The notes under the pieces are model-generated. The model saw nothing but the letters and a program-made list of their open reading frames with translations. It searched no databases and was not told the DNA's origin. Both the position numbers and the translations under genes were made by a program. A DNA stretch of 64,000 bases from Ophelia neglecta (Eukaryota): NCBI GenBank assembly GCA_965285935.1, contig OZ260664.1:46314001-46378000 (forward strand). Direction: 5' to 3'. Below, piece after piece: positions 12,401 to 62,934 of the stretch (positions are counted from its first letter, which is position 1; each line of letters begins with the position of its first letter).

Positions 12401-14353
12401 TCTTAGTAGGAGATTCTTTCATGGAATACCCCACACTCCCAAATAGACTCAAAGAGACCCTGTTGTATCTATGGAGGTGGGAGATGTGGGATGTGCAGAT
12501 GATTAAATACTTAAAGTTTATTGTTTTATCATTCACACCTGCTTAGGGTAGCCATGATAAACATGTAAAGTACTCTTGAACATGGAATTCATTTAAGTGC
12601 AGACACACCATGGAATGTACATTTACATGGGACCTAGCTGATTCAAGCAGTCTGTTTTTTTGTACACTAAAAACTGATCAAAAAAAAGTCCAACTTGTAA
12701 TCCACCATTGAATAAATTAGTACTTAACATTTTTTTTACAATAAAACTGGTCCGAATGTGCTCCATATAGCAAATCATTGATTGGCCAGGAATTGGCTGG
12801 CTGATGTCCAGTAGCGTGGACAAAGCATGTCTAGCTATTGATTGGCCATGTTAGCTTGATGAGGAGAATTATTAATCCATTGGAGAAGTAGATCAGCAGG
12901 TGTGAATATTACAGGGAGCTGTTAAGGATGAGAAGGCAAGTGCCTTGGCTCTGCAGCTAGAAGACATGATTTTTTGTTATGTTCAATAAACAGGTACTAA
13001 ATATGCATTAAAAAATAAATAATCACTGATGTGAGGCAAATAATAGTGAATATATCAGTTCAGACAAACAAACACACACATAAACACAATGAGTACACTT
13101 CTATTGCAAAATTTGGGCTGCTTTAATAAGTTATTAAAATGTGAAGAAAATGCTCACCTCAAAACTTTTAATAATAATTAGAACATGACAGAACATTCTT
13201 TTCTATCATATAGTTCTACAATAAAAAACACACTTCTACCAGAAACAAGATTCACAAATGTATTCCTTGGCTTCAATATTTTAAGAATTAAGATGCAAAA
13301 AAACATCATCCTCCCATCAAGATTCCATGTTGTACAAGTTCCTATAAACCAGATAAGGTCTAAACATATACATAAAGAAGTACATTTAAAACAGTTTAAT
13401 GACAATTTTAACCTTACCAGAATGTCTCTTTAATGTTGGACATTGCAACTTCCTATTATGTACATATGCATGTACATGTAGTTATACAACTAATTACCCT
13501 GCTCACAGTAGCAGTATGTAAGATGGATGTAGGGAGTGCAAGCAATGTAAAGCCACCCAATGGCATGGAAATTTTTTTCTCCTACAAATGTGACCTTGAA
13601 CAGTGGAGATCAAAGTCAAATTCAGGGTTATAAGTTTTACACATGAATACTTACTTGTTGTGAATGCATTCAATTTGTCCATATGGCACCATAAACTAAA
13701 ATAACAATTTTCATATTTTACAGCAAAAAAGAATGTCAGGGTCAAATTCAAGGTCACCTGTCTTTTCATTGTACGGTGTAAACATTGACTCCCTATTAAA
13801 TTGCTGAGCTAGCTTTAGCAAACTGACTTTAATATGAAATAACAAAAACCTGCTTTGTATAGTTCTCGACACAGTACCTTGACAGCCCAATTCACATCCT
13901 TTCAACTCCATAAAATATCTGAACTGTTTAACCTAAACAGCCAAAATATGGGGAAATGATTTGGATGCATGTCACCAACCACTCCCCGTTTGTTACAGCT
14001 CTGACACTTGGTAGAAAATAACTATTAAACTACGAGCTGCCAACACAAACTAGAGCTGACAACATGGAGGTGACAGTGAGGCTGACATCTCACCATTTAA
14101 CATCTCTACAATAAGTGTACTTGAAGAGAAATTAAAATGAAGTCAACCAAGGCTATAGAAAATAAAATTTAACCACCAGTAGATGTTTAAGTTCTTTCGA
14201 AGTTTGCTCTTGAAATATAATTGATTGAGCAAAAATATAATAATAATAAATGTGACATATAATTATCAATTAATTAGGCAAAATTCAGCCTGGCTTCTAC
14301 CACCTCCACTATGACTGGTGACTGCACGCAGCACAACTACTACAGGGCTGGGT

Positions 14354-57962: not shown

Positions 57963-58936
57963 TCAAACTGCCACCTCTAGTTCCTCTATGACATCGTCTG
58001 ATGCTAAGTTCACATAACCACCTAGCTCTATAGGTTGCTCCTCTGATACGTTGCCATGGCTACTGTATTGTCTCTGATTATTGGTGGGAACCTCATTATA
58101 ATAGATGTCACCACTAGAATACCCTCTTGACTGGTTATTGTAGTTTCTTGGAGCACCATTAAACTCCACCCCGTGGCCCCGGTGGCCATACTGGTTAGAG
58201 TTACTATTACACATACTTATACCATTTCTTTGTGGAGGGTCAGAGTCATTATTCTGACTGTTTCTGAGTTGGCTGACTCTTTCCCTCCCTGTTCTTTGTG
58301 ACAGGTTTCTATTTATTTCACCGTATTCTTTCTCATCTTGTCTATGCCTGTCGTAGCCTTGTGAGCTGGAGTACATTCTGAGAGCTGACAGGTCTGTAGA
58401 CCTGGCCAGTCTCAGCCGCTCAGGTTCTGGCAGTGTCTGAGGAGTGTTAATGTCCCCGTGGGATTGACACATCCTCTGGGATTGTCTGTCCACTTCCACA
58501 GCATCCGAGCACTGTGAAGTGCTGTCTGAGGAGGACCAGGAGTCTGTTTTTCTATGTGGTCTGTTCAGTTTGTTAGCCGTAGCATTGTGCCAGCTACGTG
58601 TGTGCCTCCTCTGATGTCCTCCTGACATTCTAGAAGCTTCCAGTTCCTGCGGAGTGGAGCACCGGCTGCCATCACTATGATACGGCCGGTAGGGCTCAGG
58701 GGCCATGCTGACTGACGGTTTGTTCCCATCATAACTCAGATTGCTGTTACGCCTGGTAGGGTAATGTCTGGCTGGGAGGACCTCATTACCCCAACTATAT
58801 CTGTCATGCAAGTCGGTGTGATGATGGCAAGGTGGCTGCCGAGGTGGCTGCCGCGGGTGACGGGACCTCCCCCTGAACCCACCACTCTCCTCTTGGCTAC
58901 TGCTCAACTGAGAAGTACTGTGATGATATAACTCAT
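57963..58936 (-). CDS. Protocadherin C, terminal cytoplasmic exon
   Basis: Acceptor TTCTTTCCTTTGCAG|; the phase-1 join G|AT gives D-ELYHHSTS..., in frame with the 347-aa S/R/N-rich ORF ending GGYVNLASDDVIEELEVAV*. Confidence 0.88.
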
Positions 58937-59318
58937 CTGCAAAGGAAAGAACGGCAAGATTAACATGCATGTTATTAAAGTATAATGCTTTTATATAATA
59001 TAACATATCATATTATAACAGACCATACTTTATTTCAAGAAATTTATTAACAGATACTAGTACAGTAAATGATCTAATAGAAGATGAATATGTAATAAAG
59101 GATGCACCTTTTTTTTTATAGTAATGTTAGGCCATGGCCTATTTATGGATTTTTATAATAAAAAGCTTAATAATGGTACTTTGTTATTTCCAAACAAGAA
59201 ATATCCTCAAGTTTGCAATAAAAAGTTTATTATTTTCTAGACCAGAAAAATGAAGAAAGCAAGAATTCTATTAGACCAAATATGGTATTAAATACTTTTA
59301 AGATATATTGTATCTTAC

Positions 59319-59481
59319 CCTCTGGTATCTGGGTTTCCCAGAGAGCTCCCAACCTGTGAGCGCCTCTACCATGTCTATGTGGGGGGTACATATTATTGCT
59401 GACCAGTCCAGAGTCTCTTGAATTGTCATGGTTAGGCATGTCACTAGACCAGCCACTATCAGAGTCATGACCCCCTGGTAC
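59319..59481 (-). CDS. Protocadherin C, cytoplasmic exon 2 (DSDSG motif exon)
   Basis: Acceptor TCTTTATGTTCTACAG|, donor GAGG|GTAAGA; 163 nt (54 codons + 1): VPGGHDSDSGWSSDMPNHDNSRDSGLVSNNMYPPHRHGRGAHRLGALWETQIPE. Confidence 0.9.
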
Positions 59482-60180
59482 CTGTAGAACATAAAGACTA
59501 GAATATAGCACGCCCTTTTACATTACTGTCATTCAATTTATCATGGTGATCAGATTTTCTATTCCAGGTTTACAAAAATGTTTTTAAAAAAGATTTGTTC
59601 AAAGCTCACTATTAAAATTACTAGTTTTTTTGTTGATTCTGTAGAGCATTGCAAATACCATTAGTTTTATAGTAATAACAGCCAACTGATACACTTTTTT
59701 TACTAATGTTTTTTCCCTAATACCAACTTACCAACCTCATGCCACAATGAGGTCTTATTCAACTTTCTTTGTCAATACGAAATAGATTTTCTTGTCTAAC
59801 TTGTAAAGTTACTAAAGCAAACAACATGTACTTGCTTACTTTACCAGTTTTTTGTAATCTGATTTATTTATTTTGAAGGAATTTCATCCCATCTTTTTAT
59901 AGTAAATGAGGTTTGGAATTAGCCAGTCTTACTCCTTACTAAGTCCCACATGACTAGTTATTAAAGCATTTAAGAATTATGGCCAAATTCCTTTCCATCC
60001 AGCTTAAACGATACTATATAGTTGTATATATGCAGATTGAATAATCTGAAGCATAATGTATGGGATTCCACAGCATGGGGCAACCAATGTCAGAATAAAT
60101 TGATATTTTAATCAGCAATCAAACAACCACAATAATACCCTAATTGATTATGCTATCAGTTAAGAATATATAATACTTAC

Positions 60181-62820
60181 CTGTGGAAATTTAAATGAAG
60201 GATCATCATAGGCAGCATAGGAGCCTTTTGATCGTCTGCTATCAGCATCTGAATCTCGGGAAATATTGGCACCACTGGCTGAGCCAGCATCAGCGTTATT
60301 ATTACCATCTTCTAACTGCTTCACTTTGTTTTCTATGTCCTTGTAATCTTTTGAATACTTCCTGAACCACCTTACAATTAATAACACAACAACCAAGATG
60401 ATAAGAGCAAGTCCTCCAACAATTCCTATGGCAAGAATAGTGGACTGGTCTAGTTTTAGGAGAGATGAATTCAATTCCCTGGGGGCAGCAAGACTGCTGT
60501 TGACTTTCACCTTCAAGCTCCCTTCAGCAGACAAAGGTGGAAAACCTTCATCCTGAATGACAATGCCAATGTCAAAAAGGTAATCACCTACTGTGAGAGC
60601 TTGTCGTAAAAATAAAGAACCAGTGTCCTTGTTCATGGCAAAAAAATTCCTTTCATTTCCTGACAGTATCATGTAGGTAAGAAGTTGGTTCCTGTCCTTG
60701 TCAATATCTGTAGCTTCAATTTGGGCCACTTGCTGGCCTTCGGCAATATTACTAGAAACTTCAACCATGTCCTTTCCTACCCTAGGAAACACCAATATGG
60801 GTGCATTGTCGTTTTCATCTTCAATCAAGACAGTTACCTCGGTGGTTGATGTCTTCTTTACCCCTGCCACTCCTGCTGACAGTAACAAGAGATAATTGTC
60901 AGTCTTCTCTCTGTCAGGCACTTTGGCTGTATAAAGTTTTCCAGTGTGCGCATCAATTGTAAACATATTCTCCTTACTCTGTGAGATAATTTGGAAAACA
61001 AATTTGATGTTAAGACCATTAAGCGAGGGCTGTAAAGCCACTTGGCCCACCTCTGTCCTTTCTGGTAAGTTTTCCATAATGTTAAACAAATACATCTTTT
61101 GCATGAATTCTGGAATTGCATCTACAATATGCACAATGTCTATAACTACATGTGCAAGAGAAAACCTGCCAGGCAAACCATGGTCTGAGGCCTTAACTGT
61201 GAAATTCACCCAGGCTTTGTCTGCAAAGCTTGCTAGGGTTTTCACAGAGATGTGCCCTGAAGTTATGTTGATTCTGAAGACTTGGTCCATGGGGGGCTGA
61301 ATGGCATAGGACACTGCCCCACTCAGCCCTTCATCCTTGTCCTGAGCCTCGACAGTAAGGAGAGAAGTTCCTACAGAACTGTCATACAACATGGATGCTC
61401 GGTACAACTGCTGAGAAAACACAGGAGCATTGTCATTTACATCCAGAACAACTATAATTAAAGTCTTATTGGAGCTCAGAGAGGGGAATCCATGATCATC
61501 ACATCTTATAGTAAGCTTGTAAGAGGAACTTTCTTCCCTGTCCAATGCAGTTGTGGACAGTATTTTAAAGTCAGATTCTGATATCTTATCCAATTTAAAC
61601 CTATTGTTGCCCAGAAAGCAGTCAAATTGTCCACCCCTGCCTGAGTCTGGGTCCGTTACGACCATGTGTGCCAATGACCTCCCGGCTGCAGCGCCCTCCT
61701 CTATAAGTACATGGGTGCTGTTACCATTGAATATATTCAGCAGCAAGCCTGGGGAGTTATCATTGAGATCAACTACCTTTATTTGAACTACTGCCTGAGC
61801 AGACAAGGTCAGGAGGCTCTCATCCCTGGCAATGACATTTAATGTGTATGAGCTTTTATTTTCATAATCAATCACTATTTTTGTTGTAATGGTTCCAGTT
61901 TCCTGGCCAATGTCAAAAATGTCACCAAAAGATTTTAGCGTCTTTTCAGAGAAGGAATACTGTATCTTGGCTCCTTGATCAGGATCAGTAGCTGCCAGAG
62001 TCAATATTGCACTGCCCACTTCCAGATTTTCTGTCACCTTAATATCGTAAGTCTCCTTATCGAATTTGGGACTATTATCGTTAATGTCCAGGACTTCGAT
62101 TTCAACGGCCAGCACTGCAGAGTTCTGAGGTGTTCCGCCATCAGTCGCAACAATCTGCAAGTTGTATTTATCTGTCACTTCTCGGTCTAATGACCCTACC
62201 AGTACAAGATAGAAAAATTCTTCATCAACTTCCACAGAGTAGCTCAACTCAAACAAGTCCACCGAGGATATCAAGTTGTATTGGGTAACACCAAACCGCG
62301 GACTGTCCTGGTCTTCTGCAGTGGAGATTGCCAGGGAGGTCCCTGGAGTAGAGCTCTCTGGCAATGAAAACTTGGCATTATCCACAGAAAACTGGGGAAT
62401 GTTATCATTAATGTCTAATACTTCCACTTGCACCTTTATAATTCTAAAATACTGATAGGGTAATAACTGGATGTTTAGTGAAATAAGACAGACATCGGCA
62501 GCAGGACACAGTTCATCTCTATCTATAGATTGAGTGGTTTGAAACAATCCTTGATTTGAAACTGAGAAGAATTCATTCCAGTTTTTATCATGTTCTAGTA
62601 TTGACCACTGAAGTTCACTTTTTACAGTTGCGTTATACACTAAAAATAATCGAGCATCATTGTAGATATTTCCTAGGAATGCGCCCGGTCCTTCCTCTTC
62701 TTTGACAGAGTATGATAACAGTGTATCGCTCTGGCACATGACATCCCTGGATTTGGCAAGAAAAACCCAGAGTATCAAAATCCAGGGGTACTTCAAGCTC
62801 TGGAGACGTTGTCCTGCCAT
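60181..62820 (-). CDS. Protocadherin C (7-EC, delta-like), large ectodomain/TM exon
   Basis: First true ATG at 62820 (MAGQRLQSLKYPWILILWVFLA; the ORF-track start at 62886 is GTG); EC1 DRDELC-x5-C; seven repeats; TM ILAIGIVGGLALIILVVVLLIV followed by RWFRK; donor CAG|GTAAGT at 60181/60180, phase 0 (880 codons). Confidence 0.95.
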
Positions 62821-62934
62821 TGTCAAGTAATATAGACTGTCTCTTTCTGAATGTTTCACATGTCTTGGCAGCCTAGTTACATACACTGTCTGGTTAATAC
62901 CTGGGTATCATTCCGGTTGATAAAACATCATCAT
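62821..62934 (-). other. Probable 5' UTR portion of the gene C large exon, starting with a uORF
   Basis: Acceptor CCTTTACTTTACAG| at 62935/62934 followed by ATG ATG ATG TTT TAT CAA CCG GAA TGA. Confidence 0.55.

Follow-up and report, generated by a model that had tools for sequence, protein, structure and literature searches.

Can a short protocadherin give up the calcium sites of a single joint and remain a working protein, and what shape would it then take? The question is raised by a gene that we call gene C, encoded on the minus strand of a 64,000-nucleotide stretch of the Ophelia neglecta genome (contig OZ260664.1, positions 46,314,001 to 46,378,000; hereafter the window). Consecutive extracellular cadherin (EC) repeats are rigidified as pairs by three Ca2+ ions bound at each linker (PMC8427231). 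Our reading, to which we assign a probability of roughly 0.7, is that gene C is a working, constrained three-exon protocadherin in which the EC5-EC6 joint carries no Ca2+ and is non-linear, as a kink or a hinge, while the other junctions are canonical.

Three large minus-strand open reading frames (ORFs) of 900-940 codons are found in the window, each with one Cadherin_2 and six Cadherin domains by Pfam, that is, seven EC repeats. The gene C ORF spans 60160-62886 (-), with its first ATG at 62820. Translated from there as a single exon (60160-62820), it yields an 886-residue product with the Cadherin_2 domain, the six Cadherin domains (E = 4.9e-89) and a transmembrane helix. The linkers between repeats read, in order, DINDN, DINDN, DLNDN, DVNDN, HIVDA and DENDN, at residues 136, 245, 351, 460, 564 and 668, a spacing of about 105 residues. 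As HIVDA is the fifth of this series, the odd junction is EC5-EC6.

All five motifs that serve this junction depart from the canonical pattern (coordinates on the minus strand). The EC5 xEx site is ASMLYD (61381-61398), with Tyr479 in the place of the glutamate, and the EC5 DRE site is LASFAD (61219-61236). The linker HIVDA (61117-61131) keeps only Asp567. In EC6, the DxD site is ALQPS (61024-61038), within a segment, VALQPSLNGLN, that holds no acidic residue, and the xDx-top site is SAGVAG (60862-60879), without Asp. Ligands are thus missing from XEX, DRE and DXNDN in repeat n and from DXD and XDX-top in repeat n+1, the pattern by which Ca2+-free linkers are classed. The replacements amount to E to Y, DRE to ASF, D.ND. 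to H.VD. and D.D to Q.S. Motifs interleaved with these are intact: AQDKD at the EC5 DxD site (61333-61347) and ASDHG at the EC5 xDx-top site (61177-61191), both serving the EC4-5 linker, and the set serving EC6-7 (60805-61080), namely IMEN (61069-61080), PDREK (60904-60918) and DENDN (60805-60819). With ten ligand positions counted at each linker, 1/10 (Asp567) is left at EC5-6 in gene C versus 50/50 at its other five junctions (Fisher p = 6.8e-10; p = 8.6e-9 when the xDx-top position is left out). Gene C has selectively lost the Ca2+ ligands of one junction and is otherwise canonical.

The loss is peculiar to this gene. A search with the EC5-6 piece against the 762-Mb genome of the same animal, where the window is C7:46314001-46378000, gave 116 matches, from which 22 further intact 7-EC paralogs were extracted and aligned with gene C by MAFFT (23 proteins). 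All 22 have Glu at the EC5 xEx site, (D/N)xE at the DRE site, where the middle residue is R, H or Y, a linker of the form Dx(N/D)D(E), and DxD in EC6. Gene C alone shows Y, ASF, HIVDA and QPS at these motifs. The Asp of the EC6 xDx-top site, a site-3 ligand, is absent from 12/22 paralogs, both of those in the window included, which leaves four of the five losses as peculiar to gene C. An unbiased scan of the alignment agrees with this picture: of the 162 columns that at least 19/22 paralogs conserve, 28 are different in gene C, and those of its departures that remove a charge (E479Y, D531S, E533A, D564H, D598P and D600L) all fall at EC5-6. A preliminary description of the locus had quoted ten strings from gene C, all of which lie where it placed them, and had assigned the anomaly to EC5-EC6, as the linker series confirms. 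Its count of five degraded motifs needs qualification, since the fifth, SAGVAG, is not specific to gene C.

The same pattern is found in another species. The best database match to gene C by BLASTP is P0001, 57% identical, from contig ctg21914_3x (L001) of the European Nucleotide Archive assembly ERZ25069296. It is the only match above 40% identity in a full-length word search, and the EC5-6 piece alone, a query aimed at fragments and transcript contigs, gave no match above 37%. A frameshift-aware protein-to-DNA alignment recovered the whole counterpart of gene C on L001. Its EC5-6 motifs are ASMLLN, VAGFGN, ATVDV, SLLSAGHG and SAGVGG; every loss is shared, with Leu at the xEx site and the Phe of the DRE site conserved. 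The neighbouring motifs are kept as ATDKD, ASDHG, VMEN, PDREE and DENDN, so the statement of the preliminary description that the motifs for EC4-5 and EC6-7 are intact holds in both species. Its call for orthologs with the same loss under low dN/dS (the ratio of nonsynonymous to synonymous divergence) is likewise answered in the single ortholog that the two protein searches found. The two genes share 60% of their amino acids, with 0.80 of synonymous sites differing (pS), which is saturation, and a nonsynonymous divergence (dN) of 0.31. Identity by codon position is 0.68/0.80/0.39. Because dS is saturated, we give no ratio but only the bound dN << dS. Within the gene, conservation is highest in EC5 (67% amino-acid identity), EC6 is average (56%) and the rest stands at 60%. 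For comparison, the canonical paralog L012, the most conserved member of the family, and its ortholog in ERZ25069296 (P0103/L032) give pS 0.73, dN 0.17 and 74% identity, so that gene C evolves about 1.8 times faster in dN. Gene C is under purifying selection and clearly constrained, and the loss of EC5-6 ligands is ancient, older than the divergence of at least one other species.

The three-exon structure is intact and conserved as well. Coding exon 1 (60181-62820, minus strand as are the others) has 880 codons for the signal peptide, EC1-EC7, the transmembrane helix and a juxtamembrane stretch; its consensus donor, CAG/GTAAGT, was read directly, and the exon end FPQ/V is the same in the ortholog. 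Exon 2 (59319-59481; 163 nt, start phase 0, end phase 1) encodes a segment running through GGHDSDSGWSSDMPNHDNSRDS to WETQIPE, between an acceptor ttctacag/ and a donor G/GTAAGA, also read directly. Exon 3 (57963-58936; acceptor cctttgcag/AT) encodes a low-complexity cytoplasmic tail that ends in EELEVAV before the stop. Joined by script, a product made solely for the frame check and for classing single-nucleotide polymorphisms, the three exons are in frame over 1258 codons with one terminal stop. Both downstream exons and the splice sites are recognisable in L001 with matching phases: by eye, the exon 2 homolog is a 154-nt exon of identical phases at about 12697-12850, and exon 3 is 36% identical to the downstream ORF, the C-terminus DDVI(E/Q)ELEV(A/T)V included. 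Polymorphism was read from three DNA-type runs of a single sample, whose contigs cover the locus and span its introns. The coding differences listed are 21 synonymous and 11 nonsynonymous, a ratio per site (pN/pS) of about 0.15, and 4/4 of the indels listed are intronic (p about 0.002 by length share).

In order to see what the loss could mean for the shape of the protein, we turned to predicted structures. EC4-EC7 of gene C and of the canonical paralog L003, our control, were modelled with AlphaFold2 (AF2) from the same 26-row alignment with the first row swapped; L003 likewise has no Asp at the EC6 xDx-top site. Mean pLDDT (predicted local distance difference test) was high in both models, 91.2 for gene C and 92.9 for the control, and the predicted template-modelling score (pTM) 0.49 and 0.63, respectively. 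In 10-residue blocks, gene C dips to 74 at the EC5 DRE loop, 67 at the linker, 69 at the EC6 DxD segment and 78 at the EC6 xDx-top site, compared with 94, 93, 88/73 and 91 in the matching blocks of the control, whose single dip (73) lies in a block beside EC6 DxD. By Foldseek, the control matches straight four-EC crystal structures, for instance PcdhγB7 EC3-6 and CELSR1 EC1-4, with template-modelling (TM) scores of 0.77-0.82 and a root-mean-square deviation (rmsd) of 4-5 Å, whereas gene C reaches only TM 0.44-0.46 and rmsd 17-21 Å against the same chains. Within the gene C model, residues 216-427 (EC6-7) fit two-EC structures at 2.3-2.5 Å, and for residues 112-427 (EC5-7) the fit to three-EC structures is no better than 11-12 Å (VIA-align). 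Gene C EC4-7 is thus predicted to be non-linear and broken at EC5-6, and the control to be straight.

In the gene C lineage, then, the canonical ligands of EC5-EC6 gave way to uncharged residues, in part aromatic or aliphatic, before at least one other species branched off, and the Ca2+ sites of the other five junctions stayed intact. We propose the following consequences. The EC5-EC6 junction would no longer bind Ca2+ and, without the three stiffening ions, its two repeats would not be aligned, the joint being either a kink of fixed angle or a hinge that can flex. The new residues (Tyr/Leu, Phe, Val and Ile-Pro-x-Phe, partly common to both species) may build a small interface without charge, or they may leave the joint free as a hinge. 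The adhesive arm, EC1-4/5, would accordingly differ from that of the straight paralogs in its angle and in its height above the membrane, and the different intermembrane geometry expected in the preliminary description may follow from this. Because the ligand loss has been kept under purifying selection, we think that the protein is probably bent or hinged at EC5-6. The kinked or hinged form foreseen in the preliminary description has thus found computational backing only, in an EC4-7 model that breaks at EC5-6 next to a straight paralog but has low confidence at the joint itself.

Several observations weigh against this reading, and they bear on whether the gene works, whether the joint is free of Ca2+ and whether it is bent. 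As for the first, gene C might be a decaying or silent paralog, its motif loss being early pseudogene erosion. The L001 copy of the ortholog has five +1 insertions (11333, 11364, 11422, 11837 and 11928), all within EC5-EC6, and the other ~2 kb of the gene there has none. Another 2.6-kb protocadherin ORF in the same ERZ25069296 assembly is intact, and therefore a very recent inactivation of the ortholog in that species is possible. The ortholog is also the only one found, the gene evolves faster than L012 as given above, and none of the three sequencing runs found, all from one sample, is on record as RNA; it is only the constraint on gene C that would argue for its expression. Against erosion stand the intact 1258-codon frame with consensus splice sites, a dN far below the saturated dS with EC5 as the best-conserved region, losses confined to one junction with every ligand kept elsewhere, and the low pN/pS with no coding indel listed. 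Moreover, the insertions look like assembly error, which we favour because all are +1, four of the five lie in homopolymer runs, the frame resumes after each without stops and with high similarity, and the contig is labelled 3x; probably this stretch was covered by a single read. Long-term constraint on gene C stands whether or not these frameshifts are real. For its intact constrained frame, its junction-confined losses and its low pN/pS, we reject the pseudogene reading, which we regard as very improbable, and the view of the preliminary description that the loss is not random decay is supported by the shared pattern and the conservation of EC5 and EC6.

As for Ca2+, acidic residues remain near the joint, namely Asp567, Asp480 and Asp534. 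The junction could bind the ion partially and non-canonically, for instance a single ion held by Asp567, by Asp480/Asp534 and by backbone carbonyls. Both species keep Asp567, which is position four of DxNDN, and the other two aspartates adjoin two of the lost ligands. Nevertheless, Asp480 and Asp534 are Asn in the ortholog, neither the EC6 DxD segment nor the xDx-top site offers any acidic residue, and one canonical position in ten is left. We therefore hold residual binding to be improbable, though somewhat less so than decay of the gene.

As for shape, the AF2 geometry was modelled without ions and from 26 aligned rows, and it gives no bend angle. Its confidence for gene C is lowest exactly at the EC5-6 joint, and the model resembles neither DN-cadherin EC1-4 (3UBH, 24 Å) nor LI-cadherin EC1-4 (7CYM, 18 Å). 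Such a low-confidence joint is compatible with a hinge, but equally with a kink that is poorly determined. It would also suit a third possibility, in which EC5-6 is free of Ca2+ yet roughly straight and rigid, with Tyr479, Phe532, Val566 and Ile569 packed as a small interdomain core that replaces the ions. What would then set gene C apart from its paralogs is its Ca2+ dependence or stiffness rather than its shape. The linker has exactly the canonical length, without insertion or deletion relative to the paralogs, and aromatic or aliphatic residues have come in, some of which the ortholog shares (Phe, Val-Asp and Ile-Pro-x-Phe), as such a core would have it. However, AF2 made the control straight and gene C non-straight from the same alignment, and the solved linkers fully free of Ca2+ in PCDH15, DN-cadherin and LI-cadherin are bent or flexible (PMC5120219, PMC8427231). 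A straight joint is thus unlikely, if the least unlikely of the three alternatives, and a Ca2+-free kink or hinge in a working protein is the reading that we retain.

Regarding its family, gene C has the hallmarks of a protocadherin: a run of tandem EC repeats within the usual 6-7 followed by a single transmembrane helix, ILAIGIVGGLALIILVVVLLIV (60373-60438, minus strand; 22 hydrophobic residues, 795-816, as read from the translation), and one large exon (62820-60181) that holds the whole ectodomain and the helix. No classical-cadherin catenin-binding domain was matched in the exon 1 product or the exon 3 ORF; Pfam gave no Cadherin_C in the former and no family at all in the latter, exon 2 not having been scanned separately. 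The seven repeats would suit the delta-1 subfamily of protocadherins, which is marked by seven EC repeats together with the conserved cytoplasmic motifs CM1-CM3. One homolog of the paralog L007 carries the Joint Genome Institute (JGI) name 'protocadherin delta 1', a label only.

The cytoplasmic part of gene C offers two further observations. The exon 2 peptide DSDSG(W/C)S(S/T)D...LW(E/Q)TQIPE (within 59319-59481) is conserved, and it may be the counterpart of a conserved cytoplasmic motif of non-clustered protocadherins. The C-terminus DDVI(E/Q)ELEV(A/T)V-stop (window 57963-57990, minus strand; about 13960-13997 in L001) is conserved despite the 36% identity of the tail, and looks like a hydrophobic ending of the PDZ-ligand type. 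In intron 2, at 59084-59266, contigs of all three runs show alternative joints that skip 137 or 181 nt, and word depth is doubled there (about 70 versus 30), a sign that the intron holds a short repeat or is polymorphic for an indel.

The two other protocadherin genes of the window, both on the minus strand, have a canonical EC5-6: paralog B (L015, 45706-48516) with LDREE, DEDDS and AVDDD, and paralog A (L023, 6322-9093) with LDYEK, DVDDE and AVDAD. Across the genome, the at least 22 further intact 7-EC genes, these two included, have a single ectodomain exon each, and their EC5-6 pieces match that of gene C at 29-39% identity. These protocadherins (loci L003-L030) form several tandem clusters on the chromosome-scale contig C7, for example at 15.15-15.20, 31.8, 46.27-46.38, 47.86-48.46, 54.53-54.81, 63.6, 66.09-66.97 and 69.60-69.70 Mb, with one more gene on C2. 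For an animal that is neither vertebrate nor cephalopod, the family has thus expanded to a sizeable number. The same contig also carries a giant cadherin gene at G000:C7:19167716-19173280 (L014, L018 and L031), which is not related to the 7-EC array and has an open frame of at least 1812 codons with many cadherin repeats.

Across the family, the EC5-6 linker is DxNDE rather than DxNDN in the 22-paralog alignment. Because of this linker, together with the EC6 xDx-top Asp missing from 12/22 paralogs, the EC5-6 joint may be partly weakened family-wide, to judge from these motifs. It is tempting to see in EC5-EC6 an evolvable 'geometry dial' of the tandem family, a site already weakened in the whole family with gene C as the end point of complete loss, but we consider this doubtful. 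If it were true, the paralogs would vary in the stiffness or angle of their ectodomains as well as in binding specificity, and hence in the membrane spacing at which they can engage. A crude regular-expression scan for missing linkers found none in ~25 related 7-EC database matches or in the 22 paralogs, a scan confounded by fused and giant cadherins. In any case, the locus is a clean natural comparison, with 22 canonical paralogs and one member whose fifth joint alone lost its ligands and was then conserved. It makes it possible to test directly, in a protocadherin of only seven EC repeats, how shape, stiffness and adhesion respond to a Ca2+-free joint.

Ca2+-free linkers have been described before and are widespread in large cadherins, including DN- and DE-cadherin, PCDH15, LI-cadherin, CELSR, CDHR2 and Fat; in most of these proteins their function is undetermined (PMC5120219). 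The precedents invoked in the preliminary description, PCDH15 and DN-cadherin, are correct. The bend is about 90 degrees at PCDH15 EC9-10, where it is stable, and about 80 degrees at DN-cadherin EC2-3, and in both all five motifs are replaced (PMC5120219). A close parallel in pattern is PCDH15, where one junction lost all five motifs, its neighbours are canonical and the loss is conserved across species (PMC5120219). In both proteins the joint lies in the membrane-proximal half of the ectodomain. However, PCDH15 is a tip-link filament of 11 EC repeats plus MAD12 with no sequence relationship to gene C beyond the cadherin fold, and its EC9-10 has a 3-10 helix and an FG-alpha loop as additional, dedicated elements, whereas the gene C linker has canonical length and no helix in the AF2 model (DSSP).

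DN-cadherin EC2-EC3 (3UBH; PMC5120219) resembles gene C in the replacement of ligands by uncharged residues, which in DN-cadherin form an interdomain interface, and its kink lies between repeats two and three of a four-EC fragment, the same place as the predicted break in gene C EC4-7. Unlike gene C, it belongs to the type III classical cadherins and has 15 or more EC repeats. Since 3UBH and the gene C model cannot be superposed, with the 24 Å taken over 378 residues, the predicted angle or direction differs. LI-cadherin (CDH17; PDB 7CYM) has seven EC repeats, like gene C, and exactly one Ca2+-free junction, as gene C would have; in LI-cadherin this junction is flexible (PMC8427231). That junction, EC2-3, lies in the adhesive N-terminal half, whereas that of gene C is the membrane-proximal EC5-6. 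Besides, LI-cadherin originated when a classical cadherin was duplicated internally, its EC2 holds an extra alpha-helix, and its fit to our model is poor, as given above.

The best overall matches in sequence and fold are the vertebrate clustered and delta protocadherins (PcdhγB7 EC3-6, 5V5X; PCDH1, PCDH10 and PCDH19). With gene C they share one large exon for ectodomain, transmembrane helix and juxtamembrane stretch, and an arrangement in tandem gene arrays. They differ in that gene C has its own downstream exons instead of the shared constant exons of the vertebrate clusters, as seen in the gene C pair, the only one examined. Their solved fragments are straight and fit the control but not the gene C EC4-7 model. 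In the literature that we searched, a limited library, no Ca2+-free joint is described in 6-7-EC protocadherins. The principle of bent Ca2+-free linkers is not new; what is new is the carrier, a short 7-EC protocadherin that alone among 23 members of a tandemly expanded invertebrate family shows the loss.

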